Virus record (IMG/VR): IMGVR_UViG_3300009158_000031
Location: 124,001 to 188,000 of that record
Reading direction: 5' to 3' (one strand)
DNA: 64,000 nucleotides
The position numbers and the translations under genes are program-made. Positions 19,145 through 42,470 of this stretch are shown piece by piece (positions within the stretch are counted from its first letter, which is position 1; every line of letters begins with the position of its first letter). The notes under the pieces are model-generated. The model searched no databases. It saw nothing but the letters and a program-made list of their open reading frames with translations, and was not told the origin of the DNA.

Positions 19145-19201
19145 TTGTTAATAACTTTTGATCCCGAGATTTTTTAATCTCGGGATTTTGTATTATATTT
19201 G
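19145..19201 (+). promoter_or_regulatory. Composite early promoter, copy 1
   Basis: TTGTTAATAACTT at 19145; Bacteroidota -7 element TATATTTG at 19194 (49 bp later); internal palindrome at 19161-19186. Confidence 0.8.
19161..19190 (+). terminator. Perfect inverted repeat embedded in promoter 1 (terminator for upstream operon and/or operator)
   Basis: atcccgagatt-tttt-aatctcgggat followed by tttg. Confidence 0.55.
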
Positions 19202-19223
19202 TATATACAATTTAAAACAATAT

Positions 19224-19616
19224 ATGCAAAAGATTAGTGCTCAAGTTGTCCTCATCAACGAGGAAGGAAAAATTCTCTGTGTTTCTAGAAAAGATAACCA
19301 TTCTGATTTTGGTTTACCTGGTGGTAAATCCGATCCTGAAGATAATGGTGATCCCGTTCAAACTGCCATTAGAGAAACCAAAGAAGAAACCGGTTTAGAT
19401 GTTCACGATCTTAAACTTATATTTGCAATTCATAAATACGGTTTCATGAATTATACTTATGTTGCCAAGTATTCTGGTGAAATTCATTTTAATGAACCTC
19501 ATATTGTTAAATGGGCACCAATCAAATTAGCAACGGAAGGAACCTTCGGTGTGTATAATCAATTAGTTGCAGAATCCTTAAGAGATTCAAATTATGAATT
19601 CATCCGCCATTTTTAA
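19224..19616 (+). CDS. NUDIX hydrolase
   Basis: Nudix box GLPGGKSDPEDNGDPVQTAIRETKEETGL; start moved to ATG 19224, downstream of the promoter. Confidence 0.92.
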   Translation: MQKISAQVVLINEEGKILCVSRKDNHSDFGLPGGKSDPEDNGDPVQTAIRETKEETGLDVHDLKLIFAIHKYGFMNYTYVAKYSGEIHFNEPHIVKWAPIKLATEGTFGVYNQLVAESLRDSNYEFIRHF

Positions 19617-19618
19617 AA

Positions 19619-19675
19619 TTGTTAATAACTTTATTCAAAAAGATTTTTTTATTTCACAAAGATTTATTATATTTG
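19619..19675 (+). promoter_or_regulatory. Composite early promoter, copy 2
   Basis: TTGTTAATAACTT at 19619; TATATTTG at 19668. Confidence 0.8.
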
Positions 19676-19700
19676 TATATACAATTTAAACAAATAACAT

Positions 19701-19910
19701 ATGCAACCTTTCGTAATTACTCTATCCGCTAAAGCCGCAAAATCTTTTCTTAAAGATCTTCGATCAAATGCAATTTCATTACAAACCATCGTAGAAAAAA
19801 CCCATTTTACGCATTTCGGATTTATGGAAGATTCACCTAAACTCCAAATGGCAATTCATTTAGTGAAAGAAAGATTCGGTACTAAATCATTTTCAATTGA
19901 ATACATCTAA
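19701..19910 (+). CDS. Hypothetical early protein
   Basis: 69-aa ORF directly after promoter 2. Confidence 0.6.
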   Translation: MQPFVITLSAKAAKSFLKDLRSNAISLQTIVEKTHFTHFGFMEDSPKLQMAIHLVKERFGTKSFSIEYI

Positions 19911-19928
19911 TATTAAAACCAAAATCAT

Positions 19929-20348
19929 ATGAGCAATTACAAACAATGGATGAATCAAAAACAATCAGAAGTAAAAATAACAATTTCACCTTCTGATCTT
20001 GAGTACTCTGAAATTATAAAAGAATATACATTACTTACTGGATCTACGAATTATTACGATAATCGTGATCTATACAATCAAATTACCAATAATATACGAA
20101 AGGTAATTATCTTAGAAAATGTTTCTTTAAACGAAGCTCAAACTTTCGCTGAACCTTTAAGAATTACATTCCCTAATCAATGTGTTTCACTTTATGCTGG
20201 TGAAAATTCATTCGTTGGTAATACCACTTGGAACGATCAATTAAAAATGTTTTTTGAATATCCAACATTTACGGAAATTGGAAAATCCATAATGGCAATC
20301 CGAAAAGAAGAAGCAAACGCAATGGGAATCGAAGCATCTTGGGAATAA
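19929..20348 (+). CDS. Hypothetical early protein
   Basis: 139-aa ORF in operon. Confidence 0.6.
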   Translation: MSNYKQWMNQKQSEVKITISPSDLEYSEIIKEYTLLTGSTNYYDNRDLYNQITNNIRKVIILENVSLNEAQTFAEPLRITFPNQCVSLYAGENSFVGNTTWNDQLKMFFEYPTFTEIGKSIMAIRKEEANAMGIEASWE

Positions 20349-20363
20349 TCAAAATTAATCTAT

Positions 20364-20498
20364 ATGCAATATATCAAAAAAATCTATCGTGCAATACGAT
20401 GCAAATTTTGCGGAAAGAATATATCTTCCGTTGGTGCAGGAACCGAACCTCGACCTGAAATGTGTGAGCGATGCTATGAACATGGCGGAGATGAATAA
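20364..20498 (+). CDS. Small zinc-finger protein (not in ORF track)
   Basis: MQYIKKIYRAIRCKFCGKNISSVGAGTEPRPEMCERCYEHGGDE; two CxxC pairs; fills the gap up to promoter 3. Confidence 0.6.
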   Translation: MQYIKKIYRAIRCKFCGKNISSVGAGTEPRPEMCERCYEHGGDE

Positions 20499-20555
20499 TT
20501 GTTAATAACTTTCCTACAAAACATTTTTTTATTCCACAAAAAAGTATTATATTTG
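20499..20555 (+). promoter_or_regulatory. Composite early promoter, copy 3
   Basis: TTGTTAATAACTT at 20499; TATATTTG at 20548. Confidence 0.8.
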
Positions 20556-20579
20556 TTATAACCAATTAAAAAATAATCT

Positions 20580-20822
20580 ATGAATTCATTCTATGACAAT
20601 CTAAAAGGCGTTGAAAAAGTAATGTACAAAACAAAATTCGACTTTCACATGAAATATTCTACCGGTGCTACCAAAGATTCTGCACATACTGCTGGTATTA
20701 AAGAGCTAGAAAGACTTGGAAAAATGCGTAAAGAAATGGATCAACCACAAACTTATGTAGATCTTTCAACTGGTCGTAAATTTCGTTCAACCGAATCAGA
20801 ACTTATATCACGTAATTCTTAA
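20580..20822 (+). CDS. Hypothetical early protein
   Basis: 80-aa ORF after promoter 3. Confidence 0.6.
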   Translation: MNSFYDNLKGVEKVMYKTKFDFHMKYSTGATKDSAHTAGIKELERLGKMRKEMDQPQTYVDLSTGRKFRSTESELISRNS

Positions 20823-20842
20823 CATCATATAAATTATAACTA

Positions 20843-21088
20843 ATGAAAAAATTACTCACATTTGCTCTTATCATTGTTTCTATTGCAACTTCATGTAAAG
20901 AGCCAAAAAGTAAAACCGTTGTTAATCACATAGTTCAATCTATTGACACATCATTAAAATGGAATCCGACTATTCAACGAATGGAACCAATCTATGTTTA
21001 TCATTATATAGATGGTGATAGTGTAAGAATGGCTGCTGATCGAATAAAAATCGGTGATACCATACCATACATATATTATAAATACTAA
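20843..21088 (+). CDS. Putative lipoprotein
   Basis: MKKLLTFALIIVSIATSC-KEPK lipoprotein signal. Confidence 0.6.
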   Translation: MKKLLTFALIIVSIATSCKEPKSKTVVNHIVQSIDTSLKWNPTIQRMEPIYVYHYIDGDSVRMAADRIKIGDTIPYIYYKY

Positions 21089-21097
21089 TCTTTTCGA

Positions 21098-22933
21098 ATG
21101 AAAGTAACAGACATAAGTAAAAAATACGAATTACTCGATGAAATACAGCACGTCTTAAAAAGACCTGGAATGTATATTGGTTCAACCAAACCACATCAAT
21201 CATCCGAGTATTTTTTAGAAGATGGTAAATTTCAAAAAGAAGAAATTGAATTTAATCCAGGCTTTCTAAAATTATTTGATGAAATCGTTTCCAACTCGGT
21301 AGATGAATCTAAACGTAATAAGACACTAGATACTATCGTTGTAAATGTAAACGAACAAACAAATGAAATTACCATTTGGGATAATGGTGGTATTCCAGTT
21401 GTTCAACATACTGAACACAAACAATGGATTCCAGAATTAATCTTCTCAAATCTTCGTGCTGGTTCAAATTTCGATGATACTCAATCAAGAACCGTTGCTG
21501 GAACAAATGGTGTTGGTTCCACATTAACTAATATCTTTTCCAAGAAATTTACAGTAAAAACGGCAGATGGTAAAAATCAATACCTTCAAACCTTTTCCGA
21601 CAACATGGGAAAACGAACCGAAGCTAAGATTTCCAAATCTGATAGAAAATTTACTGAAATATCTTATATCGCGGATCTTCAACAATTTGGAATGAAATCA
21701 ATTGGCGAAAAGCATCTCAAAATGATGCGTAAACGTTTAATCGATATTGCCGCTGCAAATCCAGGACTTCGAGTAAATTTCAATAAAGAGAAATATCGTT
21801 TCAAATCATTTTTAGAATATGTTAAATTATACGTCAATGAAGCTTTATTCGAATCTTCAGAAAATTGGGAATTCGCTTTTGCACCATCAAACGGATCTTT
21901 TCAATCTGTTTCCTTTGTTAACTCCATTGAAACTAAGGATGGTGGAACTCATATCAATTACATCTTAAATCAAGCAGTTGAAAAACTACGAATTCTAATT
22001 AAGAAAAAACATAAAGTCGAGGTAAAACCAGCCGAGATTCGTAATCACATTTTTCTATTTGTTAATGCAACGGTATTCAATCCGGCATTCTCATCCCAAA
22101 CTAAAGAAAAACTAATTACCGAACCTAAAGATTTTGGATCTTCTCATATCATTTCAGATAAACTTGCAATGCGTATCTTTCAATCTGAAATTGTAAAATC
22201 ATTACTTGATTGGATAGATCGTAAAAAGGAAGCTGATGAAAGAGCACAACTTCGTAAATTAAACAAGAATTTAGATACCACCAAGATTCAAAAGCTAATT
22301 GATGCAAAATCTAGAGGTGATCGTGATAAATGTGTACTTGGTATATTCGAAGGAATGAGTGCATTAAGTGCCGTTCGTAAATTTAGAGAACCTCAATCAT
22401 TCGGTGCATTTCCACTCAAAGGAAAATTCCTAAATGTTAATGAACTAAAACCATCTGATGTTATTAAGAATCGTGAAGTAGTCGATCTTATGGGTTCGCT
22501 TGGACTTCGTTTAGGTGAAGCACCTGAAAATCTTCGATATGGTAAAATTTACATATATACCGATGCTGATCCAGATGGTGATGCAATCGCTGCATTGTTA
22601 ATTAATTTCTTCGCTAAATTTTGGCCAGAATTATTTACTGAAAATCGCATCTTCCGTATTATGACTCCTATTGTGGTTGCTCAAAAAGGAAAACAAACCA
22701 TGAGTTTCTATACTAACGAAGAATATCATAAATGGTTTAAAGAAATCGATCCAAAACCCTGGTCTATCGAATACAAAAAAGGTCTTGCATCTCTTGAAGA
22801 TGTGGAATACAACGATATCATTCGTAATCCAAATACTTTATTGCTTACTAGCGATAAATTATTCAAACAAACTTTATCTGAATGGTTCGGTGGAGATTCA
22901 ACCCCTAGAAAAACAAAATTGTTAAAAGCGTAA
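21098..22933 (+). CDS. gp39: DNA topoisomerase II large (ATPase/TOPRIM) subunit, T4 gp39+gp60 fused type
   Basis: HVLKRPGMYIGS, LFDEIVSNSVDE, DNGGIP, AGTNGVGSTLTN, FEGMSA, PLKGKFLNV, YTDADPDGDAI. Confidence 0.96.
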   Translation: MKVTDISKKYELLDEIQHVLKRPGMYIGSTKPHQSSEYFLEDGKFQKEEIEFNPGFLKLFDEIVSNSVDESKRNKTLDTIVVNVNEQTNEITIWDNGGIPVVQHTEHKQWIPELIFSNLRAGSNFDDTQSRTVAGTNGVGSTLTNIFSKKFTVKTADGKNQYLQTFSDNMGKRTEAKISKSDRKFTEISYIADLQQFGMKSIGEKHLKMMRKRLIDIAAANPGLRVNFNKEKYRFKSFLEYVKLYVNEALFESSENWEFAFAPSNGSFQSVSFVNSIETKDGGTHINYILNQAVEKLRILIKKKHKVEVKPAEIRNHIFLFVNATVFNPAFSSQTKEKLITEPKDFGSSHIISDKLAMRIFQSEIVKSLLDWIDRKKEADERAQLRKLNKNLDTTKIQKLIDAKSRGDRDKCVLGIFEGMSALSAVRKFREPQSFGAFPLKGKFLNVNELKPSDVIKNREVVDLMGSLGLRLGEAPENLRYGKIYIYTDADPDGDAIAALLINFFAKFWPELFTENRIFRIMTPIVVAQKGKQTMSFYTNEEYHKWFKEIDPKPWSIEYKKGLASLEDVEYNDIIRNPNTLLLTSDKLFKQTLSEWFGGDSTPRKTKLLKA

Positions 22934-22937
22934 ATAT

Positions 22938-24296
22938 ATGAAAGTAGCTGAACAGAAATCAAAATCGGTAACTGAATATCTGGATACCGAATATTTAAGT
23001 TATGCCAAGTATGTGGTGGAAAATCGTGCAATACCTTCGGTTATTGATGGATTCAAACCAACACAAAGAAAAATCATTTTTACTGCAAATCGAGCATGGA
23101 AGAATGGAACTGAAAAACCTTTTAAGATTTTTCAATTGAGCGGTAAAGTTGCAGTTGAATCTTTTTATCATCATGGTAATGCATCACTTGATGCTGCAAT
23201 TATTGGTATGGCACAATCATTTAAGAATTCACTTCCGCTCCTTGAAGAGATTGGTCAATTTGGATCTTTGCGATCTCCTGAAGCCGGTGCTCCTCGTTAT
23301 ATCTCAACTAAATTATCTAAAAATTTCAGATTGATTTATAAAGACTTCGAATTACTTACTCCTCGAATGGAAGAAGGAAATGAAATTGAACCTGAATATT
23401 TCTTACCAATTATACCTACTGTTTTATTAAATGGATCTTCCGGTATTGCAGTTGGATTTGCCACTAACATTCTTAACCGAAATCCAATTGATTTAATCGA
23501 TGCTTGTCTTGCGATTGTTAATGGAAAGAAATTTAAAGAACCTTTACCATGGTGGAGAGACTTTAACGGTAACGTTGAAAAAGTCGATGGCAGTGCATCA
23601 TCATTTGTATTTCGTGGAATCTATGATGTAAAAGATACTACAACCGTAGAAATCACAGAACTTCCACCTTCAATGACTCTTGAGAAATATGATAATATTC
23701 TTAATGGTTTATTGGAAAAAGGAATCATTCGTCATTATGATGATAATTGTTCAAATGGAATTAGCTATACCGTAAAAATTGGTAGAGCAGAAATGAAACA
23801 ACATGAACCTCGTCTTGAAGGTTATTTAAAATTAGCCGAAGCCGAAACAGAAAATCTAACTTGTTTAGATGAACGTGGTAAGCTAATCATTTTCAAAAAC
23901 GTAAATGAAATTATCAATTACTTTGTAAACTTCCGTCTAAGTTATTATGACAAACGAAAACAATATTACGTTGATCTATATACCCGAGACCTAACTAGAT
24001 TATCAAATCGAGCTAGATTTATTAAAATGGTTGTTGATAGCAAACTAAAAATTAATAACGTTCCTAAAGCACAAATCGAAGCTGAATTAATAAAGAATAA
24101 ATTCGATCAGCTAGATGGATCGTTTACTTACTTACTTTCAATGCCTATTCATTCATTAACGAAAGAAAAAATCGATGAATTGCTTAAAGATGTTGAAACC
24201 AAAAAATCTGAAATCGAAGAAATTCAAAAGTTAACTAAGGAAGAATGGTATAAACAAGACCTTATGGCTCTTAAAAAATCATTACAAACCAAATAA
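22938..24296 (+). CDS. gp52: DNA topoisomerase II medium subunit (T4 gp52/GyrA-like)
   Basis: RAIPSVIDGFKPTQRKI, FYHHGNAS, GQFGSLRSPEAGAPRYI (active Tyr), LLNGSSGIAVGFATNI. Confidence 0.96.
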   Translation: MKVAEQKSKSVTEYLDTEYLSYAKYVVENRAIPSVIDGFKPTQRKIIFTANRAWKNGTEKPFKIFQLSGKVAVESFYHHGNASLDAAIIGMAQSFKNSLPLLEEIGQFGSLRSPEAGAPRYISTKLSKNFRLIYKDFELLTPRMEEGNEIEPEYFLPIIPTVLLNGSSGIAVGFATNILNRNPIDLIDACLAIVNGKKFKEPLPWWRDFNGNVEKVDGSASSFVFRGIYDVKDTTTVEITELPPSMTLEKYDNILNGLLEKGIIRHYDDNCSNGISYTVKIGRAEMKQHEPRLEGYLKLAEAETENLTCLDERGKLIIFKNVNEIINYFVNFRLSYYDKRKQYYVDLYTRDLTRLSNRARFIKMVVDSKLKINNVPKAQIEAELIKNKFDQLDGSFTYLLSMPIHSLTKEKIDELLKDVETKKSEIEEIQKLTKEEWYKQDLMALKKSLQTK

Positions 24297-24301
24297 TTCA
24301 C

Positions 24302-24562
24302 ATGAAAAAATATATCATCATTGCGATTGCAGCCTTAATTATAGAAGCTGCTGGTACCATGTACATATCAACCGTTGCTGATAAAAGTATATCAATGATA
24401 TTTTGGGCTTCTCTTGGTCCTTTCCTCGGTCTACCATTTGTAGGCTATATGGTTGAATCTAAAACTTGGAAAGACCGTATAAAAATGGCTTTAGCCTCTT
24501 CTACTGGTTTTACTATTGGAGCGGCAATCATTTATGGAGTTAACAGCACTCATCTTTTTTGA
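24302..24562 (+). CDS. Small 3-TM membrane protein
   Basis: Three hydrophobic segments in 86 aa. Confidence 0.55.
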   Translation: MKKYIIIAIAALIIEAAGTMYISTVADKSISMIFWASLGPFLGLPFVGYMVESKTWKDRIKMALASSTGFTIGAAIIYGVNSTHLF

Positions 24563-24783
24563 TGGCCTAGTAGATATATTCCCAATAAGTATTTTGATTA
24601 TACTTCTCGGATCAATAGATGACCACCTTTGTTTAATGATAATTTTGTTAAGGAAAAACTTTATCAAATAAATTCTGGTCATTAGAGTATCATATATTGA
24701 ATCCATATTTTTAGATTATAGGAATACTATAATCATATACTATTTTATTATAGTTCTTAGATATATAAAATAAAACCAAGGAA

Positions 24784-25026: not shown

Positions 25027-25029
25027 AAA

Positions 25030-26257: not shown

Positions 26258-26264
26258 TTTGTAA

Positions 26265-29200
26265 TTGAGCGCTAGACAAGTAAATGCACAAGAAGCAATT
26301 GTTTCCATCACTAGCAAGATGGAAGCGATGCTTCAGCAAGTGCAAACCCAATATGATCAGTCAATTAATTTATTAACGTCATTAAATACAACAATGACGG
26401 TTGATGTTGGGCAGGAGCTTAAGAAGCAAACCTCCTTACTTATGTCCATTGAGGCTAAGATAGGAACCAATGGAGGTAGTGCTGGCGAAGATAAAATGTT
26501 AGGCAAGAATTTAGAAATTCTCTCTAAAGGATTGAGTAAACTTGTTAAAGCGGCTGAAAAAATTAAACCTAAAACTGGCGAACAAGTAAAAGAATTTTTA
26601 GGTAATATAGCTGATGGTCTAGCTAGTTTAACTGATAAAATAGATGAAAAGAAAGCTGAAATTATAGCGAATACGGTTATAACTTTAGCAAAAGGTGTTC
26701 TTCTATTTGGATTAGCAATGACTCTATATGTAATACTCGGACCAACCGCAATGTTAGGTTCAATGCTATTTGGATTAACAATTAGACTCTTATTGAAATC
26801 TGCCGGAGAAGTAGATGAAAATTCGCTTAAAGGAATTGTTGCAGTTGCTGCATTAGGTCTTGGTGTTATATATTTTGGATTAGCAATGGCTTTATATGCA
26901 GTTATTGGTATTCCTGCAATGCTAGGTGCTGTTTTATTTGGATTAACCGTTAGATTATTAGCTAAAACTGCCGGATTAAATGATCCTAAAGTTGCTGCTG
27001 GAATTGTCGGAATTGCTGCATTAGGTCTTGGAGCCATATATTTTGGATTAGCAATGTTGGGTTATGCAATTATCGGTATTCCAGCAATGCTAGGTGCTGT
27101 TTTATTTGGATTAACCGTTAGATTATTAGTGAAAACAGCTGGTTTAAACGATCCTAAAGTTGCTGCCGGAATGCAAGCCTTAATAGGACTTGGTAAAGCT
27201 ATTTTAATATTCGGTTTAGTTATGTTGGCTTATGCAATTATTGGTATTCCTGGATTGATTGGTGCTTTGGTTCTTGCATTAACTCTTAAACTTCTTTCGA
27301 AAAGTATTAAGTCAATGGGATCTAATATGGTCAGAAAAGGAATTATAAATATGGCTTTAGGAGCTATTGCTATTATTCTTCTCGGATTAACTATTATATT
27401 ATTTGCAAAAGAGGTTCCTATAATGAGTTCTCTTTATGTTATTCTTACCATTGGTGCATTTGCTTTAGCCTTCTATATAGTAGGTAAATTCTTTAATGAT
27501 ATATTAAAAGGAGCTCTTGCAGTTGCTGCTATAGGATTAGGTATATCATTCTTAGCCTTAGGTTTATTCTTTTATAAATCAGTTGGAATGACTTGGGAAG
27601 AAACCGCAATGTTAGGGGTTACTATCGCTGGTCTTGGATTAGTAATGGGAGGTGCTGGTGAATTCTTTATGGAAATTATTAAAGGATCCGCTGCAATGAT
27701 AGTCGCCGGAATTGCTCTAATAGTTATTTCTGCGGGTTTACTTGTATTCGCTCAAACTAAATTAACATTTCAAGATGCTGCTATTCTAGGAGCTACCATC
27801 TTAGGACTTGGTGTTGTAATGGGAATTGCCGGTGCTGGACCGGTACCTTTATTTATTGCATTAGGATCTGCCGCAATGATTGTTGCTGGTTTATCTTTAG
27901 TAGTTCTTTCTCTTGGTCTTGGAGCATTCAAGCTAACCGGATTTAAAGTTGAAGATGCTTTATCTTTAGGAGCTGCTATAGGTGCAGTTGGTGTAACTAT
28001 GGGTATTGCCGGATTAGCCTCTCCATTTATTATATTAGGTAGTGCAGCAATGGCTATTGCCGGTGTTGCATTAATGCCTCTTGCATTAGGATTGGCCGTA
28101 TTCAAAGCTATTGGTTGGAAAAAAGGAACCGATGATGAGAGTTTAAAATCTGCATTAGGTTCCGTAATATCTGGTTTTCTTGGAGGAGATATGCCTGGTG
28201 GTATTCTTGCATCAATTAAATTTGCTGCTCAAGCGGCAGCTAGATCGGTTCTTCTATTCATAGCAATTCCGCCATTAATTCTTGCCGGTGTTGCTTTATT
28301 GTCTATCTCTTTAGGATTAGCCGCATTTAAGAAAGCCGGATTTACTTCTTCGGATTCTGCTAATATGGAAGCTGCTATTGGTGGTATCGTTGGAGCATTC
28401 TCATTAGTTACTGATAAAGAACGTCAGAAGAAAATGGGAATCAATGTCGATTGGATGGATTTAATGATTGGTATTATGGCACTTTCACAAGCCGGAAATA
28501 CTCTATCTTCATTAGCAAAAGGAATTCAAGCATTTGCTAATCTTTCAGTTATTGAATATGAGGTGGTTGGTGCTGGAACTAAAAATGCTAAAATCGTTCC
28601 TAAAGGAATTACCAAATTAAGCAAGTCCGATTTTGAATCAGCGGCTTATGGAATGGCACAAGTAATTGGGGCTATTGCCGAACCATTCGCTTTAGTTGGT
28701 AAATTAGAAAAGGGTACACCATCTGGAAATCCTTTCTATGATGCAATATTCGGTGGTGGATTTGTATCTGCCGGTATTGATGCATTATCAAGATCTGGAG
28801 ATACTCTTGTTAATTTAGCAAAAGGAGTACAAGCATTCGCTAATCTCGAAATAACTGAATATGAAGTAATTGGTGCTGGAACTAAAAATGCTAAAATAAT
28901 TCCTAAATCGATTACGAAAATGTCGCCGACAGATTTTGCTGCTGCCGGAGCCAATATAGCAAAAATTATTGCGGTTGTTGCCGAAGCATTCGCTAAAGTA
29001 GGTAAAGATGAAGCTGCATCTGAAGGAGTATTCTCTGGAGGATTCTTATCTAAAGGAGTCGAAGCATTAGCTAACATAGGAGAAAATCTACAAGGAATTA
29101 CTGAATCGGTTATTAAAGTTGCAACAGGAACATTTACTCCAATGACTGCCGTTCAAGACGGAAAAGGTACTAAATTAGTACCTGGAACTCCTATTAAAAT

Positions 29201-30005
29201 TTCTAAGGCAATGTTAGAAGAGGCTGCCAGAACAATTAATAGTGTTATAATGGTTCTAGGACAGGGAATGATGGACTTCGGAACATTCGTTGACGAGAAT
29301 GAAGATTCTATCGACGAAGCTATTGAATACATTCCTACAATGAGTGAAGCCTTAATGAAGATGGTAGAGGTTAATGAAAAATTCTCTAAGATAACAGATG
29401 CAGATAAAGGAGTTAAATCATTTACTAGTTTTAATCAAGCAGTAATGGATGCTTATGATCCAGCCAAGCAGAAAAATCTTCCTCAAACAGCAGGATATAT
29501 GATGCTATTCGTTAAAGGTATTGAAAGACTTGCTGCACCGGCCGATCAATTAGGTAAGGTTGCATCTAACGTAGAACGTATAGAAGCAGCAATGAAAAAT
29601 ATCAAAACTCATGTTAATGGATTTGATATGGAAAGGCTTACTAAAACGGATTCTCTATTTAAGTCAATGGCGATTTTATCAAAGAATCCTGAAGCTATGG
29701 CTGCTAAAATTAATGATACTCTTAAAGTTGCATTTGAAGAATTTGGTAAAGCTCTTACCGAAGCAATTAAAGAATCCGGTGGTGGTGGTGGCGGTGGCGG
29801 TGGTGGAATACTTGAAGGCGTTAAAGATATTTTGACTCCAGGTCCAGCAGGTGCTGCTCCAAAAGCTACCGATCCAAAAGGAAAGGCTGCTCCTGGACCT
29901 GCTCCTCTCACTGCAGAGGCGATTGGAGCTGCTATGTCGAAAGCTTTAAATGCCGCTTCAATTACCATAAAACCGGCAGCAAACGCGGTATTCAAAACCA
30001 CCTAA
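26265..30005 (+). CDS. Tape measure protein
   Basis: 1246 aa, Gly/Ala/Leu-rich amphipathic repeats (56-aa period near 26850-27200, about 100-aa period near 28520/28820); follows the chaperone genes; TTG start uncertain. Confidence 0.8.
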   Translation: MSARQVNAQEAIVSITSKMEAMLQQVQTQYDQSINLLTSLNTTMTVDVGQELKKQTSLLMSIEAKIGTNGGSAGEDKMLGKNLEILSKGLSKLVKAAEKIKPKTGEQVKEFLGNIADGLASLTDKIDEKKAEIIANTVITLAKGVLLFGLAMTLYVILGPTAMLGSMLFGLTIRLLLKSAGEVDENSLKGIVAVAALGLGVIYFGLAMALYAVIGIPAMLGAVLFGLTVRLLAKTAGLNDPKVAAGIVGIAALGLGAIYFGLAMLGYAIIGIPAMLGAVLFGLTVRLLVKTAGLNDPKVAAGMQALIGLGKAILIFGLVMLAYAIIGIPGLIGALVLALTLKLLSKSIKSMGSNMVRKGIINMALGAIAIILLGLTIILFAKEVPIMSSLYVILTIGAFALAFYIVGKFFNDILKGALAVAAIGLGISFLALGLFFYKSVGMTWEETAMLGVTIAGLGLVMGGAGEFFMEIIKGSAAMIVAGIALIVISAGLLVFAQTKLTFQDAAILGATILGLGVVMGIAGAGPVPLFIALGSAAMIVAGLSLVVLSLGLGAFKLTGFKVEDALSLGAAIGAVGVTMGIAGLASPFIILGSAAMAIAGVALMPLALGLAVFKAIGWKKGTDDESLKSALGSVISGFLGGDMPGGILASIKFAAQAAARSVLLFIAIPPLILAGVALLSISLGLAAFKKAGFTSSDSANMEAAIGGIVGAFSLVTDKERQKKMGINVDWMDLMIGIMALSQAGNTLSSLAKGIQAFANLSVIEYEVVGAGTKNAKIVPKGITKLSKSDFESAAYGMAQVIGAIAEPFALVGKLEKGTPSGNPFYDAIFGGGFVSAGIDALSRSGDTLVNLAKGVQAFANLEITEYEVIGAGTKNAKIIPKSITKMSPTDFAAAGANIAKIIAVVAEAFAKVGKDEAASEGVFSGGFLSKGVEALANIGENLQGITESVIKVATGTFTPMTAVQDGKGTKLVPGTPIKISKAMLEEAARTINSVIMVLGQGMMDFGTFVDENEDSIDEAIEYIPTMSEALMKMVEVNEKFSKITDADKGVKSFTSFNQAVMDAYDPAKQKNLPQTAGYMMLFVKGIERLAAPADQLGKVASNVERIEAAMKNIKTHVNGFDMERLTKTDSLFKSMAILSKNPEAMAAKINDTLKVAFEEFGKALTEAIKESGGGGGGGGGGILEGVKDILTPGPAGAAPKATDPKGKAAPGPAPLTAEAIGAAMSKALNAASITIKPAANAVFKTT

Positions 30006-32199: not shown

Positions 32200-32256
32200 T
32201 TGTTAATAACTTTATTCAAATAAATTTTTTTATTCCACAAAAAAGTATTATATTTG
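32200..32256 (+). promoter_or_regulatory. Composite early promoter, copy 4
   Basis: TTGTTAATAACTT at 32200; TATATTTG at 32249. Confidence 0.8.
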
Positions 32257-32282
32257 TATATACAATTTAAAACAATATACAT

Positions 32283-33493: not shown

Positions 33494-33550
33494 TTGTTAA
33501 TAACTTTTGAAACAAATATTTTTTTATTCCAAAAAGATTTATTATATTTG
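33494..33550 (+). promoter_or_regulatory. Composite early promoter, copy 5
   Basis: TTGTTAATAACTT at 33494; TATATTTG at 33543. Confidence 0.8.
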
Positions 33551-33576
33551 TATATACAATTTAAAACAATATACAT

Positions 33577-33847: not shown

Positions 33848-33912
33848 TTGTTAATAACTTTCCATCAATAAATTTTACTTTACCAATTTTTTTTATTATA
33901 TTATACTATAAA
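33848..33912 (+). promoter_or_regulatory. Composite promoter, copy 6 (variant -7: TATATTAT-ACTATAAT)
   Basis: TTGTTAATAACTT at 33848; TATATTAT at 33897 (49 bp later). Confidence 0.7.
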
Positions 33913-33935
33913 TAATAACTTAAACAAATCAACTT

Positions 33936-34535
33936 ATGGCTAAAAACGAATCATTAAAGGAATTAGGCGTTTCATTTAAAGAAACCAGATCAGAACGAGT
34001 ATTTACCGATTTGTATCATCGACTTAAACCAGGATTAACAAATTATGTCTTTCAAATTGTAAAAGATTACGATATGTCTAATCATATTGTTTCGGCGGTA
34101 ATGTCTGAGGTTTACAATAAAATCGATAAATATGATCCCAAATGGCATATATCAACGTGGATTTATCGAATAGCATACACTCATGCTTGTGGTTATCTTC
34201 GTGCTAAAAAAGTACAAAGAACGGTTTCCCTTTCTGCATTCGATAACGATGAAAATCGTAACCGTTTACATAAACTTGAATTTGAATCTATCGAAGATCA
34301 TCGTGATGCAATCGAAAAACGTGAGGATGCTGATGCGGAAAAAGCACACATTTTATACCTTCGTACAATCGTCGATAATTTACCAATCGAATATCGTGAG
34401 GTAGTAGTTGAAAAATTCTATAACGATTTAAAATACGATGAAATCGCCGAGAAACTAAATATTCCATTACATACCGTAAAAAATCGAATTTCTCGAGGAA
34501 AACGAATCATTCAAGAAGAACTTACCAAAAAATAA
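33936..34535 (+). CDS. ECF-type RNA polymerase sigma-70 factor
   Basis: Region 2 (VYNKIDKYDPKWHISTWIYRIAYT); region 4 HTH (LPIEYREVVVEKFYNDLKYDEIAEKLNIPLHTVKNRISRGK). Confidence 0.92.
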   Translation: MAKNESLKELGVSFKETRSERVFTDLYHRLKPGLTNYVFQIVKDYDMSNHIVSAVMSEVYNKIDKYDPKWHISTWIYRIAYTHACGYLRAKKVQRTVSLSAFDNDENRNRLHKLEFESIEDHRDAIEKREDADAEKAHILYLRTIVDNLPIEYREVVVEKFYNDLKYDEIAEKLNIPLHTVKNRISRGKRIIQEELTKK

Positions 34536-34658: not shown

Positions 34659-36581
34659 ATGAAGAAATTGCTTAAATCATTTCTATTGATGATTATTCTA
34701 GCTCTTCCAATTCTTACGTTTGCACAATCTGGTCCACCAGCACCAAGTGCAGGAATCTGGGCTTTAATAGATACCAACTATTCTGTTGGTACATCAACAT
34801 TAGGAATATCAAAAGCCAGAATAACTCTTAAAAACACAACCAGTACATTATATACTGGTGTACAATTTAGAGTATTCTACGACAAAAATGCTTTCTCATC
34901 TGCATCAGTTGCTTTAGTAGGATCAACAACTAATCTTTACCTACAATCAGTAGATAACAATACGGCAGGTTATGTTACTATGTCTCTAGTTTATACAGGA
35001 AATAGTTCAGCATATACATTAGCAGACGGTGAAAGATTTGAAATTACATTTAATCACGTATCATCCGGTGCATTTTTTGCCTTACCAAGTATTAGTGCAT
35101 TAACCTGGACTGGTTCTGCTACTTTTCCTGAGATTGCTGCTGAGCAAACTGGTTTAGATACGGTCTTAAATTTACATAGTTATGGTGGAACTTGGTTAAG
35201 ACCACAACTTAGTTATCATGGTAAATTTACTAACGTAACCGCAACACCAGCTAAAAACCTTCCGCTTTCATTAGAAAAAAAAGTTAAGATTGGTGGAACT
35301 TGGGGTGCACATGCAACTTACACAACTAACCTTTTAGGAGTATTTTCATTTACGGAATTAATCGATACAACTTATTATGATGTTCGTCTTTCTATTCAAG
35401 GAGATACAATGTCAGTTGGTAACGTTATTTCAACTGCCGATGCTCAGCTAATTAATCAATGGGTTCTTGGTGGAGCTACTCCTTCTGGATTTGATTTTTA
35501 TACTGGAGACGTTAATTCATCTAATGGAATATCCATCACCGATGCTTATGGAGTATTTGGTAGAATTGCCGGTAGATTTAGCACTTGGCCTAACTCAGTT
35601 AAAGATGTAAAATTCTTTACTGAAACAGAATATACCACAATCGTTGGAACCCCAACCACAAACTTTACTGGAACTATTTCAGGAGCTACGAACTTCTATT
35701 TTGATATACTTCCTGGAGCACCAGATAGTGTAACTTATTATGTATGTGTACCTGGTGATGCAAATGGAACCGGTTATCATATGGCTCGTCTAACCCCAAT
35801 AGATATTATTGTTAGTCCACCTGCCGGAACTCCTATCCAACAAGAAAATGTTATTGATATGAAAGTTGAATATGACTTTCCTACATCTTCTATGGAAATA
35901 GGTCTACCTTCACTTTCTGTTAAAGAAGGAAATCTAGTGGAACTTCCAGTTACTGTTAAAACTAATGGAAAAGATATTTCAGCATTACAACTTTCAATGC
36001 TATACGATCAAACGCTTTTACAATTCAAAGATGTTAAGAATTCTCAAAAATCCATGTTTTGGATGTCTTCTATTAATCCTATGAATGGTATTATAGAATG
36101 GGCCGGATATGATCCTTCATCTAACAAATCATATATGATTTCTGATGGATATGAAATATTCACTCTTCGTTTCTTGGCTTTGAAACCTCAAGCAGAATGG
36201 AATCAATCACCTCTTTATACTTCTCGTAAATTTTCAGGTGATGCTTATTCTAAAGATATGAATATTACTCCAGCAAATGGAATTTTGATTGTCGCTAAAA
36301 TGGCACCTATTTCTGGAGGTTTAAGTGAAAATGAAATGACTATATTTCCAAATCCAACATCTGGTGAAATTACCATCGACTTTACCGTAAAACAGACAGG
36401 TCGAGTAAAGTTATATATAGTAGGCATGAATGGAGAAATCAATCACATAATTCTTGATAAAGATATGCCAGAAGGTGAATATGTTTATACTTCAAATATT
36501 AATCATCTTACTCAAGGAATTTATGTTGCTTCTTTACAAGCCAAGAATCAAACTATAAGTAAAAAAATAATCAAAAACTAA
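34659..36581 (+). CDS. Secreted cohesin-Ig-dockerin-cohesin protein with T9SS C-terminal sorting domain
   Basis: Signal peptide; cohesin-like YTGVQFRVFYDKNAF; dockerin/EF-like ISTADAQLI..GDVNSSNGISITDAY; second cohesin LVELPVTVKT..ISALQLSMLYDQTLLQF; CTD TIFPNPTSGEITI..GIYVASL..KKIIKN. Confidence 0.82.
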   Translation: MKKLLKSFLLMIILALPILTFAQSGPPAPSAGIWALIDTNYSVGTSTLGISKARITLKNTTSTLYTGVQFRVFYDKNAFSSASVALVGSTTNLYLQSVDNNTAGYVTMSLVYTGNSSAYTLADGERFEITFNHVSSGAFFALPSISALTWTGSATFPEIAAEQTGLDTVLNLHSYGGTWLRPQLSYHGKFTNVTATPAKNLPLSLEKKVKIGGTWGAHATYTTNLLGVFSFTELIDTTYYDVRLSIQGDTMSVGNVISTADAQLINQWVLGGATPSGFDFYTGDVNSSNGISITDAYGVFGRIAGRFSTWPNSVKDVKFFTETEYTTIVGTPTTNFTGTISGATNFYFDILPGAPDSVTYYVCVPGDANGTGYHMARLTPIDIIVSPPAGTPIQQENVIDMKVEYDFPTSSMEIGLPSLSVKEGNLVELPVTVKTNGKDISALQLSMLYDQTLLQFKDVKNSQKSMFWMSSINPMNGIIEWAGYDPSSNKSYMISDGYEIFTLRFLALKPQAEWNQSPLYTSRKFSGDAYSKDMNITPANGILIVAKMAPISGGLSENEMTIFPNPTSGEITIDFTVKQTGRVKLYIVGMNGEINHIILDKDMPEGEYVYTSNINHLTQGIYVASLQAKNQTISKKIIKN

Positions 36582-36586
36582 TAATC

Positions 36587-36916: not shown

Positions 36917-36935
36917 TTAAAAAAATTAAAACAAA

Positions 36936-37232: not shown

Positions 37233-37242
37233 ACCAAAATTT

Positions 37243-37962: not shown

Positions 37963-39726
37963 ATGTACATTAGATCAATTATATTCTTTATTGCCTTTTG
38001 GTTCACGTCAATAGCAAGTTATGGTCAGTCTTTTAATTATTCATATACTGATCCTTGTACAGGTGTAGTCAAGACAATACCGGTTTCTACTAATGGAATA
38101 ACGGTAACCTATTACGGCCAAATCCATACATTTCAACCTACTGATTTTTACAATGGAGGTTTTGAAAGTTGGGCTCAAACGGTATACTCATCCTTTGGAA
38201 ATAATAATCCATGTGCTTCTATTGTAGGTCTTCCTACTGGAATTAATATAGCACAAAACACAGCAATCAATTTCTTAAGTATTATAAATTCTCTATCTGC
38301 TATTAGTGATTTATCTTCTTTAGGTGGAGCTACTAATTTATTATCAGGAATTGGAAGTGTTTCCGGTTCTACTAGTAATAAAAAGAAAGATGATAAAAAG
38401 AGTGGATCCGCTCAAACAGACGGAACAACCACAACTACTGAAGGTAGCGTATCAACTCCTAATGGAGGATCAACAACATCAGGTTCATCAGGAAATTCCG
38501 GATCCACTCAAACGAATGGAACTGCTACAAATACGGAAGGAAGCGTATCAACTCCAAGTGGAGGTTCAACAACTTCAGGATCTTCTACTAATCAAGGAAC
38601 TGGAAATACAAATCCAACTCAACCTACTCAAACAGGAGGTCAAACAACTCAACCACCGGTAGGTTCTACTCAAAATCAAACTGGCACAAATGGAAATAAT
38701 AACACGAGTAATACCAATAGTAATTCTAGTGGGTCTAGTAATACTAGCAATAATACAAACAATACTCAACCTACGACTGGTACAAATCAAACACAAAACC
38801 CTACCACAACCCAAAATGGAAATTCACAGAGTGGAAGCACAAATTCAAATAGCGGCAATGCTAACCAAAATGGGAGTGGATCCTCTAATAGCAATGGATC
38901 GAGCAACCAAAATGGTAGCGGATCAAACTCAAACGATGGATCTTCTCAAGAAGGTAAAAGTGGAAGCGGAAATACTCAAGGAAGCGAAACGCCTAAAGAA
39001 GAAGGTGGAAAAACCAACCTAGTAGGTGGAGCCGTTTCGACTTTAGCAAATTCAACTAGTTCTGGTAAAGCCGCTTCAACTGAAAGTAGAAAACCCACAA
39101 TTCTAGGAAGTAGTGATTTTGTTGGATTTAATTTTAAAGATTCCGATATTGATCGAGGAGCTAAATTTACAGGAGGTTATACTTCATTAAGATGGGATGG
39201 ACAAAGATCCCATGGAATTTTAGTTGATTATACAACTGCTCTTAAAGGACCAAATATTACTGGATTTTATGCAATCATAAAGAAGAAGAGAATTGATTTA
39301 ATATCAACTACGCTTACATTAGGATTTGATCGAAAGACTTCGGTTTATGGAACTTTGGCTCTTGGTCAAATGTGGAATATTGATAAAAAGAAAAAACTTA
39401 AAGCAGTATACATGTTAACCGGATCATTTGGTTCTGTATATGGCGAAGAATTTGTTGGTACTGCTGCAATTGCCGGTGTAATGTACGATTGGAAAATTTC
39501 TAAACGAATAGATATTAAATTAATGGGGCTATATGTCTATGCTCCATATGTTAGTTATTATAATGACATACTACTAAAATCTCCTCATGTAGTTCTTCCT
39601 ATCATTGGAACTAACATTGGACTTACGAAGAGATTTAAGTTAAACATAAATGGTGGTGGAGCTTGGGCATTACAAGAAAATGCATTAAACTACACCATAA
39701 TGATGGGTACTAGATTTTTATTATGA
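37963..39726 (+). CDS. Outer-membrane beta-barrel protein with a long Ser/Thr/Asn/Gly-rich stalk
   Basis: Signal peptide; about 220-aa low-complexity linker with a 31-aa duplication (TEGSVSTPNGGSTTSGSS / TEGSVSTPSGGSTTSGSS); amphipathic strands ending NYTIMMGTRFLL. Confidence 0.65.
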   Translation: MYIRSIIFFIAFWFTSIASYGQSFNYSYTDPCTGVVKTIPVSTNGITVTYYGQIHTFQPTDFYNGGFESWAQTVYSSFGNNNPCASIVGLPTGINIAQNTAINFLSIINSLSAISDLSSLGGATNLLSGIGSVSGSTSNKKKDDKKSGSAQTDGTTTTTEGSVSTPNGGSTTSGSSGNSGSTQTNGTATNTEGSVSTPSGGSTTSGSSTNQGTGNTNPTQPTQTGGQTTQPPVGSTQNQTGTNGNNNTSNTNSNSSGSSNTSNNTNNTQPTTGTNQTQNPTTTQNGNSQSGSTNSNSGNANQNGSGSSNSNGSSNQNGSGSNSNDGSSQEGKSGSGNTQGSETPKEEGGKTNLVGGAVSTLANSTSSGKAASTESRKPTILGSSDFVGFNFKDSDIDRGAKFTGGYTSLRWDGQRSHGILVDYTTALKGPNITGFYAIIKKKRIDLISTTLTLGFDRKTSVYGTLALGQMWNIDKKKKLKAVYMLTGSFGSVYGEEFVGTAAIAGVMYDWKISKRIDIKLMGLYVYAPYVSYYNDILLKSPHVVLPIIGTNIGLTKRFKLNINGGGAWALQENALNYTIMMGTRFLL

Positions 39727-40715
39727 GAAAGTTTATCACCACAATAATTGCCATCTTGTTAACCGGTGCTACATATGCACAAGCGTTTACATATTCAGGC
39801 TACATATATAACGCAAATGGTACAGGAGCAGTAAATGTTCCAGTAAAGTTATATAAGAGAACAACTCCAAATATAACTGGTTTTACGTCTCAAACAAACT
39901 ATAATGGTCACTCATATTATAGATCAACCGGTTCTATGACGTGGACTGATGCAAAACAAGCTTGCATAAATATGAATGGGCACTTGGTTACAATTGCTAA
40001 CGCCTCTGAACAATCATTCGTATTTAATACATGGCCATCAGGATGGATTGGATTTACTGATGAATCGGTTGAAGGTACATTTGTATGGGTAACTGGAGAA
40101 CCTGTAAATTATACCAATTGGAATCCTGGTGAACCAAATAATGCAGGCAATGAAGATTATGCTCAATTTGTTAGTGGCGGTAAATGGAATGATCTACCTA
40201 ACACATCTTTACCTTATGTAATTGAATTTGATTATATTGTAACCACTACTCCATGGGTTTTGCATCAAACCGTATACACAAACGCTAGTGGATATTATTC
40301 ATTCAATCAATTGACAAATCCATCAGTTGAATGGTATATTCGATATGATGCACCAACACCAATCACAATACATCAAACATCTGATTTAAGTACAATTGGA
40401 AATATCGTATTAGGAGTTACCACCAAGAAATCTTTACATTGGAATATGTTCGATGTGAATAATGATGGAAATATAACGATATCTGATGCATACTATGTGA
40501 GTGGAAAGAAAAACGGAATATTTGCAAGTTGGATTGGATCTCAATCATCAGCCTTATATACGCCAGCCCAATTTAATATTCTAAATACCGGAACTACTAA
40601 TTTAAAGGCAACATACCCTGGAGTAAGCTCATTTACAATATCAACTCCAGTGAATGGTGGATCTGCAAATTATTACCTAATTGCTCCAGGTTATGCTGGA
40701 CAAGTAACATACTAA
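39723..40715 (+). CDS. Secreted Ig-like/C-type lectin/dockerin-like protein
   Basis: Signal peptide; CTLD motifs MTWTDAKQAC, GHLVTI, WIGFTDE..EGTFVWVTGE..NYTNWNPGEPNN..EDYA..GKWNDL; FDVNNDGNITISDAY. Confidence 0.88.
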   Translation: MRKFITTIIAILLTGATYAQAFTYSGYIYNANGTGAVNVPVKLYKRTTPNITGFTSQTNYNGHSYYRSTGSMTWTDAKQACINMNGHLVTIANASEQSFVFNTWPSGWIGFTDESVEGTFVWVTGEPVNYTNWNPGEPNNAGNEDYAQFVSGGKWNDLPNTSLPYVIEFDYIVTTTPWVLHQTVYTNASGYYSFNQLTNPSVEWYIRYDAPTPITIHQTSDLSTIGNIVLGVTTKKSLHWNMFDVNNDGNITISDAYYVSGKKNGIFASWIGSQSSALYTPAQFNILNTGTTNLKATYPGVSSFTISTPVNGGSANYYLIAPGYAGQVTY

Positions 40716-40721
40716 ATATTT

Positions 40722-41177
40722 ATGAAAAATCTACTTCTTATATTACTTCTGCTTCCAATGTTATCATTCGGACAAATCAATTCATGTGTTCATGTTGATT
40801 CGGTTTATTCAACCGCTAAATATAAGGATATGGGTAATCGTGATATTCGCTTTGGTATTAGACAAATGACCGAGGATATTCTTTCTGAAAAATATTGTAT
40901 CAATTCATCATCTCCGGATGTAGATGTAGAGGTATTTTTCTTTGGTTTACCTAGAAGTACTTATAGAATAATTGGAGTAGAGAAAACTAATCAAATAACT
41001 CAAGTTGGCATTCGTATTTATTATAATGGTGTTAAATACGAAGCTTATGGAGAATCTGATACTGAAATACGAACTGTGATGTTAGAGATTGTTGAAGGAC
41101 AGACTCCATTTTCAAAGATGACGGTTTCTAATGCGATAAAAAAAGCAATAGAATCATGCGTATCTCAAATGCCTTAA
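40722..41177 (+). CDS. Exported protein, possibly CsgG/LptE-like fold
   Basis: Signal peptide; alpha/beta pattern ending in helix VSNAIKKAIE. Confidence 0.45.
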   Translation: MKNLLLILLLLPMLSFGQINSCVHVDSVYSTAKYKDMGNRDIRFGIRQMTEDILSEKYCINSSSPDVDVEVFFFGLPRSTYRIIGVEKTNQITQVGIRIYYNGVKYEAYGESDTEIRTVMLEIVEGQTPFSKMTVSNAIKKAIESCVSQMP

Positions 41178-41617
41178 TTATATTCTTACTCTTTATACCA
41201 TCATTCATATTTGGACAAATTAAAGTTCAAGATGTTGGTGACGGATGGCAAAGCAAAGTAGATTCTGCTATTACTCTTATACAGAAAACTGATACCATCG
41301 CCTATCAAATCTTAATAGAAAATTGTAAGGATGTGGAATTTATTATTGGTAAGTACTCTACTACTAAACCTCCTTATACGATTGCTATAACCACTAAAGA
41401 TATGAATCTAAATTCCATCAATAATATAGCAGCCGTGTTAATACATGAATCATATCATCTTTTTATATACAATAACAAAATAGTATATTCACCAACCGAT
41501 GAAGAAGCCACTTGCTATGAAAGAGAATATGAATTTCTTTGTAAACTCCCTAATGTTGAAGATTGGCTATTTCTTAATGCCATGAACAACATCATCCTTT
41601 TCCGAAATCGGAAGTAA
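41156..41617 (+). CDS. Exported zincin-like metallopeptidase
   Basis: Signal peptide; IAAVLIHESYH (HExxH) followed by EEATCY. Confidence 0.65.
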   Translation: MRISNALIIFLLFIPSFIFGQIKVQDVGDGWQSKVDSAITLIQKTDTIAYQILIENCKDVEFIIGKYSTTKPPYTIAITTKDMNLNSINNIAAVLIHESYHLFIYNNKIVYSPTDEEATCYEREYEFLCKLPNVEDWLFLNAMNNIILFRNRK

Positions 41618-41671
41618 CTTTTTATTACACGGTTCATATAATTAATATATTGATCTCTTAAAATTAAGGAA

Positions 41672-42298
41672 ATGAAACCACACAAGCTAAAAGGAGATTT
41701 TGATCTAGATGAATCTTCATCTAACAAAATCAAAGAAGTAAAAGATAAAATATCCAATTGGCTTTGGATGAATATTGGATGGCAATTTAGATACATTTAT
41801 CGTAAAATTCGTAATCTAATTAGATGGACTCCTATTATTTGGAAAGATCAAGATTGGGATGATACTTTCATATTTGAAATTCTAAAATTCAAATTGACCA
41901 ATCAAGCTAAATATATTGGTGGTCAGGATCGTCATACAACGGCAAAAAGAGATGCCGAGATTATGATGACTTGCGTTAGATTAATTGATCGTATACAAGA
42001 TGATTTCTATGATAGTGAATATACAGATTATCATGAAGCTGATTTTAGATTTGAAGATTGCGAAGATAAACCCGGATATTCACAATTACACATTGATGAG
42101 ATTTCTAATAGATTTCCAGAATACTTCTCTAAATATCCAAGACAATATAAACGAGCATTAGATCCTAATACTCATTGGTATTATAGCGAGAAATCTGATA
42201 AGACAATTGCAATGTGGATTAGTAACGAAAATCAAAAACGAGCACAAACTCTACTCTTCAAAATTATAAACGAAAGAATCCAAGGATGGTGGGATTAA
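41672..42298 (+). CDS. Conserved phage hypothetical protein
   Basis: 208 aa; IWKDQDWD..FEILKFKL..GWWD. Confidence 0.6.
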   Translation: MKPHKLKGDFDLDESSSNKIKEVKDKISNWLWMNIGWQFRYIYRKIRNLIRWTPIIWKDQDWDDTFIFEILKFKLTNQAKYIGGQDRHTTAKRDAEIMMTCVRLIDRIQDDFYDSEYTDYHEADFRFEDCEDKPGYSQLHIDEISNRFPEYFSKYPRQYKRALDPNTHWYYSEKSDKTIAMWISNENQKRAQTLLFKIINERIQGWWD

Positions 42299-42403
42299 TC
42301 AACAGATGTACTTCTTAGTTCATCTATTGACCCTAATAGAATCAATAACTATTATATACATTATCTTACAATCAATACCTCTATTGTTAATAATTGGCTA
42401 AAA

Positions 42404-42470
42404 TTGTTAATAACTTTATGACTCGAGATTTTTTAATCTCGGTTTTTTGTATTATATTTATACTATAATT
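42404..42470 (+). promoter_or_regulatory. Composite promoter, copy 7 (variant -7: TATATTTA-TACTATAAT) with internal palindrome
   Basis: TTGTTAATAACTT at 42404 (partial copy at 42384); CGAGATT-TTTT-AATCTCG at 42424-42441; TATATTTA at 42453. Confidence 0.72.

Follow-up and report, generated by a model that had tools for sequence, protein, structure and literature searches.

Seven copies of a 13-base box, TTGTTAATAACTT, lie within a 64,000-nucleotide window (positions 124,001 to 188,000 of IMG/VR record IMGVR_UViG_3300009158_000031) of the 254,393-bp contig of a lake jumbo phage. All seven are exact and occupy the + strand, although only about 0.02 exact matches are expected from base composition. 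With up to 2 mismatches allowed, 22 matches are found against 8.1 expected, and 0 of 100 shuffles reach 22. Each box starts exactly 49 bp before TATATT, the beginning of a Bacteroidota -7 element, and a T-run lies 25 nt after the box start in all seven. The boxes, their promoter elements, and the genes they precede are collected below.

Table. Box-containing promoter cassettes and associated features in the window (window coordinates)
Position	Strand	Feature	Details
19145..19223	+	Cassette 1	Box 19145-19157; hairpin plus T-run about 19160-19187 (-18 kcal/mol, z -5.3); -7 TATATTTG 19194-19201; leader up to the ATG of a NUDIX gene (19224)
19619..19700	+	Cassette 2	Box 19619-19631; T7 run 19644-19650; -7 19668-19675; leader up to a 69-aa ORF (19701)
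20499..20579	+	Cassette 3	Box 20499-20511; -7 20548-20555; heads the operon with the T4-like topoisomerase II genes (21098, 22938)
32200..32282	+	Cassette 4	Box 32200-32212; -7 32249-32256; followed by a run of small ORFs
33494..33576	+	Cassette 5	Box 33494-33506; -7 33543-33550; followed by an 89-aa ORF
33848..33935	+	Cassette 6	Box 33848-33860; variant -7 TATATTAT 33897-33904 followed by ACTATAAAT; heads the sigma-factor operon
33936..34535	+	Phage ECF-like sigma factor gene	Sigma70_r2 plus r4_2; first gene after cassette 6
42384..42396	+	Degenerate second box	2 mismatches; 20 bp upstream of the box of cassette 7 and 69 bp from its -7
42404..42481	+	Cassette 7	Box 42404-42416; hairpin plus T-run about 42420-42444 (-9.6 kcal/mol, z -4.4); variant -7 TATATTTA 42453-42460 followed by ACTATAAT; heads the phosphoesterase operon (42482)

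The arrangement described in the original prediction, seven boxes each 49 bp from a -7 element with a T-tract between, is confirmed in this window, although several details require correction. The 49-bp distance was thought to be invariant, but across the whole contig there are about 25 cassettes, all on the + strand, at distances of 49 (19 copies), 59 (5), and 70 (1) bp, roughly whole helical turns, with extra second boxes at 69 and 71 bp. The first box base is T or A and base 11 is C or G, so the GTTA-A-TAAC palindrome is broken in some copies. The variant -7 at 33897 is followed by ACTATAAA rather than by ACTATAAT, as had been stated. The strong hairpins of cassettes 1 and 7 lie inside the spacer. 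The proposed division into two subclasses is descriptive only; genome-wide there are three leader types.

The cassettes carry the -7 element of a Bacteroidota sigma-A promoter (-33 TTTG / -7 TAnnTTTG), placed about 20-40 nt before the start codon, but not its -33 element. Five of the seven window copies have TATATTTG, while the two variants match at 7 of 8 positions or fewer. In F. psychrophilum, the -7 occupies -12 to -5 (PMC9723704), and at a promoter of this type transcription would start 5-9 nt after the -7. At the place of the -33 element, about 19 bp upstream of the -7, where TTTG or TTG would be expected, the cassettes have a T7 run without G. An ECF-type -35/-10 reading of the box, considered by eye on the cassette sequences, was dropped because the T-run stays with the -7, not with the box, in the 59-bp and 70-bp copies. 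The box and the -7 are conserved islands, with pairwise identities of 0.96 and 0.94, respectively, against 0.48 for the spacer and 0.52 for the leader. Essentially every TAnnTTTG site upstream of an ORF in the phage genome is a box cassette. Cassettes are absent from the 21.5-111 kb structural block, and together with gene content this makes the predicted early timing plausible, though it is inferred without expression data. Two lake metatranscriptome runs hold only short contigs of 90-95% relatives and give no transcription starts, although one RNA-library contig runs across a cassette.

A megablast of 15 kb against a phage database found only one weak 420-bp match, so there is no annotated relative. 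Other viral contigs carry the box, with a bimodal distance histogram at 48-50 and 57-60 bp, and most of these carriers share 2-8 proteins with this phage at 40-70% identity.

The box is also a host element. In 401 Flavobacteriaceae genomes, the forward box with a -7 occurs in 109, against about 16 control matches. About 70 matches are at exactly 59 bp, and these are gyrB promoters. In an unbiased draw of 30 gyrB upstream regions, 26 of the 29 that were readable carry a TGTTRATAA element at 58-60 bp. Most of the gyrB promoters with the box, as read by eye, also lack a TTG at the -33 place. The reverse box occurs in 140 of the 401 genomes, against about 20 controls, and sits at the same position upstream of hup, encoding HU (7 of 7 loci), and mraZ (5 of 5 loci). 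Further carriers are a ribonucleotide reductase gene, Pol III PHP/exonuclease, dnaX, rpsF, purH, an HU-CCDC81 gene, lon, and some 16S operons. A mapped sigma-A start in F. psychrophilum (dnaE/dnaQ) has the box at 39 bp. Host distances fall at 39-40, 49-51, 58-61, and 68-70 bp. Because the gyrB, hup, and mraZ hits are orthologous promoters, they count as a few evolutionary instances rather than hundreds. Generality is further limited by a sample of 300 genomes across the phylum (301 with the genome G002), in which the 12-mer TGTTAATAACTT, the box without its first T, with a -7 was only slightly above control and most matches were again gyrB promoters. None of 16 unbiased 16S upstream regions had the box, indicating that it is not a general strong-promoter element. 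An Rfam scan of loci where the box promoter precedes non-coding DNA found nothing, and a reading of the loci L312-L314 as rRNA leaders proved wrong.

The original interpretation, a fixed-geometry activator or UP site read by a host factor, possibly DnaA, or by an injected phage protein, is partly supported. The box is a separate, selected promoter-upstream element with constrained geometry, and it is most likely read by a host factor. The explanation favored here, with moderate confidence, is that the box is an upstream promoter element of the Flavobacteriaceae host that a lineage of large myoviruses has copied into its host-type (sigma-A) promoter cassettes. In this view, a host DNA-binding protein, probably a symmetric dimer or a DNA-bending nucleoid protein, binds the GTTA-A-TAAC core and, from a fixed face of the helix, helps RNA polymerase at promoters that have a strong -7 but no -33 TTG, with the box center about 33, 43, 53, or 64 bp before the T of the -7. 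Each phage cassette consists of the stop codon of the previous gene, the box, a free spacer that may hold a terminator hairpin, a T-run, the -7, and an A-rich leader, and would restart transcription of the next block of small or replication-related genes, much as PeSL cassettes do in T4-type phages. The anatomy, the quantized spacing, the selective conservation, and the occurrence at host genes in both orientations are established by the sequence analysis, whereas protein binding, activation rather than repression, the transcription start, and early timing are inferred. The site could instead serve a repressor or an insulator, and the palindrome is weakened by the A-to-G variant at box position 6, common at gyrB, and the C-to-G variant at position 11 in the phage 59-bp class. 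An SOS repressor site was rejected, as the Bacteroidetes LexA-like motifs are GGA-N5-TCC and CTAA-N5-TTAG.

Among the alternatives, a Bacteroidota-type UP element read directly by the C-terminal domain of the RNA polymerase alpha subunit, with no separate activator, is the least improbable, though still unlikely. The box lies at positions that alpha-CTD can reach, shifts by whole helical turns are tolerated, the box is found in either orientation, and it occurs at a minority of rRNA operons. In E. coli, the rrnB P1 UP element keeps partial function when moved by one turn. However, UP elements are expected at the strongest promoters, above all those of rRNA, and the 16 unbiased 16S promoters lack the box and use phased A-tracts instead; a general rRNA UP element was rejected on this sample. 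The G and C of the box are strictly conserved, unlike minor-groove A/T reading, and the carrier genes look like a specific regulon (replication, nucleoid, division) rather than simply the strongest promoters. A DnaA box read by host DnaA acting as a transcription factor is not supported and seems very unlikely. Although the reverse complement, TTAT(T/C)AACA, is one base from TTATNCACA, with the natural variation falling on the N position, every instance has AACA where DnaA boxes have CACA. The dnaA promoters of five genomes of the family carry a CACA-type box and no TGTTRATAA, and occurrence in both orientations at a fixed position fits a symmetric site better than a monomeric 9-mer. The carrier genes (ribonucleotide reductase, Pol III, gyrB) do resemble the DnaA regulons of other bacteria, and one candidate oriC-like region holds both box types, but the oriC observation rests on a single unverified locus about 2 Mb from dnaA. 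An oriC at gyrB was rejected because there is no DnaA-box cluster upstream of gyrB.

A phage-encoded or virion-delivered reader, with the host occurrences unrelated, is the most doubtful of these possibilities. Every host-type promoter of the phage carries the box, which is kept across a diverged phage lineage, but an injected protein is unnecessary when hundreds of host genomes carry the same 13-mer at the same phased distances upstream of single-copy housekeeping genes. No HU-family gene is present in the phage, and no candidate phage reader was identified. It is likewise improbable that the box has no transcriptional role and is conserved only as the homologous edge of a mobile promoter-terminator cassette that mediates recombination, or that it acts in the RNA at the 3' end of upstream messages. 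The repetition of about 25 cassettes between small genes, in the manner of PeSLs (PMC2839356, PMC4122927), the terminator-like hairpins of some copies, and the RNA contig spanning one cassette speak for these readings. Yet the spacer next to the box has diverged while the box has not, and the box keeps quantized distances to the -7 at host genes whose upstream neighbor is divergent, and in both orientations, which excludes an RNA 3'-end role there.

The cassettes can be compared with several described systems. PeSL (promoter-early stem-loop) cassettes of T4-type phages are also short composite terminator/promoter modules with host-sigma promoters, repeated many times, all co-oriented, between small variable genes of a large myovirus (PMC2839356, PMC4122927). 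Here the repetition and location fit, but the promoter is of the Bacteroidota -7 type, a stable hairpin is found in only 2 of 7 window copies and in 3 of about 25 genome-wide, and the most conserved part is an extra box 39-70 bp upstream that the host also uses. Class I activator sites (CRP at -61.5, -71.5, and -82.5) and the Fis/UP elements of rrnB P1 in E. coli depend on the helical face, as is inferred for the box, and like the box occur at distances differing by about 10-11 bp and are shared by growth-related genes; the sequence and phylum differ, and for the box, binding and activation are inferred from sequence alone. The DnaA box shares a 9-bp core one base away and replication-related carrier genes, but differs at its conserved C. 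T4 early promoters with upstream A-rich elements offer a further comparison (PMC2988021). Those promoters are stronger-than-host versions of host sigma promoters with an added upstream element, as the phage cassettes are inferred to be, but the T4 element is an A/T tract next to the -35, whereas here it is a discrete 13-mer with conserved G and C, one to three turns further upstream. No description of the box was found in the searchable literature. String searches for the box, its core, and its reverse complement returned nothing relevant, and the work found on Bacteroidota promoters and on Flavobacterium start-site mapping describes only -7/-33 elements.

The phage thus probably plugs into an undescribed host regulatory system. 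A broader possibility, tentative and somewhat less likely than not, is that TTGTTAATAACTT marks a previously undescribed global regulon of Flavobacteriaceae that couples DNA replication (Pol III genes, ribonucleotide reductase), supercoiling and nucleoid (gyrB, HU), cell division (mraZ/dcw), and growth genes (some rRNA operons, rpsF, purH) through one orientation-independent, helix-phased upstream site. A lineage of large phages would then wire all its host-type promoters into this regulon, so that phage early expression follows the host's replication or growth state. Transcription control in Bacteroidota beyond the -7/-33 elements is poorly known, and the box gives a concrete 13-bp handle, as well as a compact, portable upstream element for expression tools in Flavobacteria. 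On the host side, it links the promoters of gyrB, HU, mraZ, replication genes, and some rRNA operons in Flavobacteriaceae, pointing to an unknown master factor that could be fished out directly with the site. On the phage side, it shows how a group of abundant freshwater phages may build strong promoters by copying a host control element rather than only the core promoter.

The phage sequence is a linear viral contig of 254,393 bp (33% GC) with an estimated completeness of 83%, and its DNA is found in freshwater and lake metagenomes. The window is bases 124,001-188,000 of this contig. The contig encodes a tail sheath, a large terminase, T4-like topoisomerase II, an ECF-like sigma factor, and a cohesin protein with a type-9-secretion C-terminal sorting domain, the last a host-secretion signal in a phage gene. 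It is therefore a large myovirus of a Bacteroidota host. In a simple ORF call, 329 of 338 ORFs lie on the + strand. The observation behind the original prediction, that seven exact copies of the box each precede a -7 element by the same distance, is confirmed: all seven are at the predicted positions on the + strand of the window, each starts 49 bp before TATATT, and about 0.02 exact matches would be expected by chance.

The whole contig carries 13 exact and 12 one-mismatch boxes on the + strand and none that is promoter-linked on the - strand. About 25 of these form a cassette of roughly 95 nt, consisting in order of (T/A)TGTTAATAA(C/G)TT, about 12 variable nt, a T7 run, ATTCCACAAAAAAG-like filler, the -7, an A-rich leader, and the ATG. 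The distance from box to -7 is 49 bp in 19 copies, 59 bp in 5, and 70 bp in 1, second boxes occur at 69 and 71 bp in two cassettes, and nothing lies between these values. In the 19 copies at 49 bp, mean pairwise identity is 0.96 for the box and 0.94 for the -7, but 0.48 for the spacer after the box and 0.52 for the leader. The box is therefore kept by selection and is not simply carried along in a recent repeat. Two window copies, and three genome-wide, hold a strong hairpin plus T-run inside the spacer (-18 and -9.6 kcal/mol for the window copies), while the other five window copies have none, and only the length of the spacer seems to matter. One truncated cassette, outside the window, retains the box, the T-run, and the ATTCCGCAAAAAAG filler, but its -7 is replaced by unrelated sequence. 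A 268-nt contig from an RNA library (run X24, record 9) runs across a whole cassette of another locus of the phage (genome about 214046), reflecting either read-through transcription or DNA carry-over.

Practically every TAnnTTTG site upstream of an ORF in this phage is a box cassette, yet the cassettes are absent from a block of large structural-type ORFs and from a second stretch of the contig. A different promoter-like motif, CATATAA(T/A), lies 5-60 nt upstream of about 45 ORFs all over the genome, including the structural block, and occurs 76 times on the + strand against 35 on the - strand. This motif looks like a separate, T4-late-like promoter class resembling the T4 late TATAAATA, and it may be the late or middle promoter read with the phage sigma. 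Its presence fits the idea that the cassettes are the host-polymerase class, for which early timing is inferred. The window also contains an ORF of about 1,230-1,246 aa that is Gly/Ala/Leu-rich, has 168-nt tandem repeats and further internal repeats, and has no PHROG match, as well as a family of at least seven small paralogous genes whose first 47 nt (the start codon region) are 66-94% identical.

Coordinates of features in the phage genome (G000) and at two host loci
Feature	Location	Coordinate system
CATATAA(T/A) motif	8870, 13337, 20826, 41635, 44915, 47679, 52726, 53878, 56459, 57044 (and about 35 more in G000)	window
Family of small paralogous genes	9183-13395	window
Cassette sequence matched by the RNA-library contig	20500-20554	window
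Repeat-containing ORF	26265-30005	window
168-nt tandem repeats within that ORF	26694-27303	window
Cohesin protein with type-9-secretion sorting domain	34659-36581	window
Block of large structural-type ORFs without cassettes	21.5-111 kb	phage contig
Second stretch without cassettes	166.5-197.7 kb	phage contig
Truncated cassette	196808-196860	G000:C1 (outside the window)
Conserved non-coding sequence after a box promoter	about 1282-1500 (- strand)	L312 (host locus)
Conserved non-coding sequence after a box promoter	likewise	L314 (host locus)

The box is not confined to this phage. A scan of viral contigs for the box plus TATATTT at any gap of 33-57 nt hit more than 119 loci, and the distance histogram has two peaks, at 48-50 bp (29 hits) and 57-60 bp (60 hits), with little elsewhere. 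The convincing cases have quite different spacers, and most of them share 2-8 proteins with this phage at 40-70% identity, indicating a diverged phage lineage. One of the loci (L001) is the same phage.

Host genomes carry the same element. A scan of bacterial genomes gave the first hints, returning at least two Flavobacteriaceae 16S operons with the box 49-51 bp before the outer promoter, and lon in Rikenellaceae-like Bacteroidales at 49-50 bp. An unbiased sample of 16 Flavobacteriaceae 16S upstream regions had no box, however, and the box is therefore not a general rRNA element. The decisive test was a pattern search over 401 Flavobacteriaceae genomes. The pattern searches used exact 12-13-mers, so that frequencies are lower bounds, and the host hits are largely orthologous promoters. 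The forward box with a -7 occurs in 109 genomes against about 16 control matches, with about 70 matches at exactly 59 bp, 13 at 60, 5 at 58, 18 at 49-51, and 7 at 68-70. The 59-bp class is the gyrB promoter (25 of 30 loci). Of 30 gyrB upstream regions drawn without regard to the box, 29 could be read, and 26 of these carry TGTT(A/G)ATAA at 58-60 bp. At the host gyrB loci (L281-L309), a hairpin plus T-run with stems that look covarying by eye sits between the box and the -7, even where the upstream gene is divergent. It is therefore not a terminator for a co-directional gene, and it may be a supercoiling-sensitive cruciform.

The reverse-complement box is even more frequent, found in 140 genomes against about 20 controls, and at the same place. 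It lies 60 bp from the -7 of hup (HU; 7 of 7 loci), with a second box-like copy about 20 bp further up, and 48-50 bp from the -7 of mraZ-rsmH (5 of 5 loci), directly beside three GTGG-type repeats. In these mraZ promoters (L399-L403), the three 11-bp GTGG(T/G)AAAAA repeats lie between the box and the -7 and resemble the MraZ operator repeats described in E. coli. Other carriers, confirmed by Pfam, are Pol III PHP/exonuclease (box to -7 distance of 39-40 bp), the ribonucleotide reductase large subunit (49 bp), an HU-CCDC81 protein (49 bp), dnaX (58 bp), rpsF (68 bp), and purH (70 bp). The Pol III case includes a mapped sigma-A start in F. psychrophilum. Measured from the box centre to the T of the -7, all of these fall into four groups, at 33-34, 42-45, 52-55, and 62-64 bp. 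With the -7 at -12 to -5, the centres lie near -45, -55, -65, and -76. At two further host loci (L312 and L314), a box promoter at 49 bp appears to drive about 200 nt of conserved non-coding sequence that ends at a convergent gene and has no Rfam match, and this may be an unknown small RNA of Flavobacteriaceae. In 300 further genomes sampled across the phylum (301 with genome G002), the 12-mer TGTTAATAACTT, which is the box without its first T, was only slightly above control when paired with a -7, and most of those matches were again gyrB promoters.

The analysis establishes a quantised distance with a free spacer, independence of orientation, a missing -33 TTG in the cassettes and in most of the gyrB promoters read by eye, and a coherent set of host genes. 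Together these point to a protein-bound upstream site acting on sigma-A polymerase from one face of the helix, although protein binding, the transcription start, and early timing are inferred from sequence alone, and activation as opposed to repression is inferred from the position only. The symmetric core GTTA-A-TAAC and the orientation result favour a dimer or a bending protein. Because hup and an HU-domain gene are themselves carriers, an HU/IHF-family protein is a candidate, but this is speculation, and the phage has no such gene.

The interpretation offered in the original prediction, a fixed-geometry upstream site read by a host factor, possibly DnaA, or by an injected phage protein, is partly supported. 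The box is one base away from the DnaA box, but the conserved C is always A, and dnaA promoters in the same family use CACA-type boxes without any TGTTRATAA. In the host dnaA promoters examined (L363-L367), a conserved TTTTGTTCACATATTTG sequence places a CACA-type DnaA-like box over the -7 of dnaA, suggesting autorepression. One oriC-like locus holds both kinds of box, although this is a single unverified case. An SOS repressor is excluded by its known motifs. Direct reading by alpha-CTD, as at UP-type elements, cannot be excluded, but it fits the gene set and the conserved G and C less well.

The cassette as a whole behaves like the PeSL promoter-terminator modules of T4-type phages, and the box would work like a class I activator or Fis/UP-type site. 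No description of this sequence was found in the searchable literature, which does not cover subscription journals. The box is an upstream element of putative early phage promoters that appears to be borrowed from an apparently undescribed host regulon.
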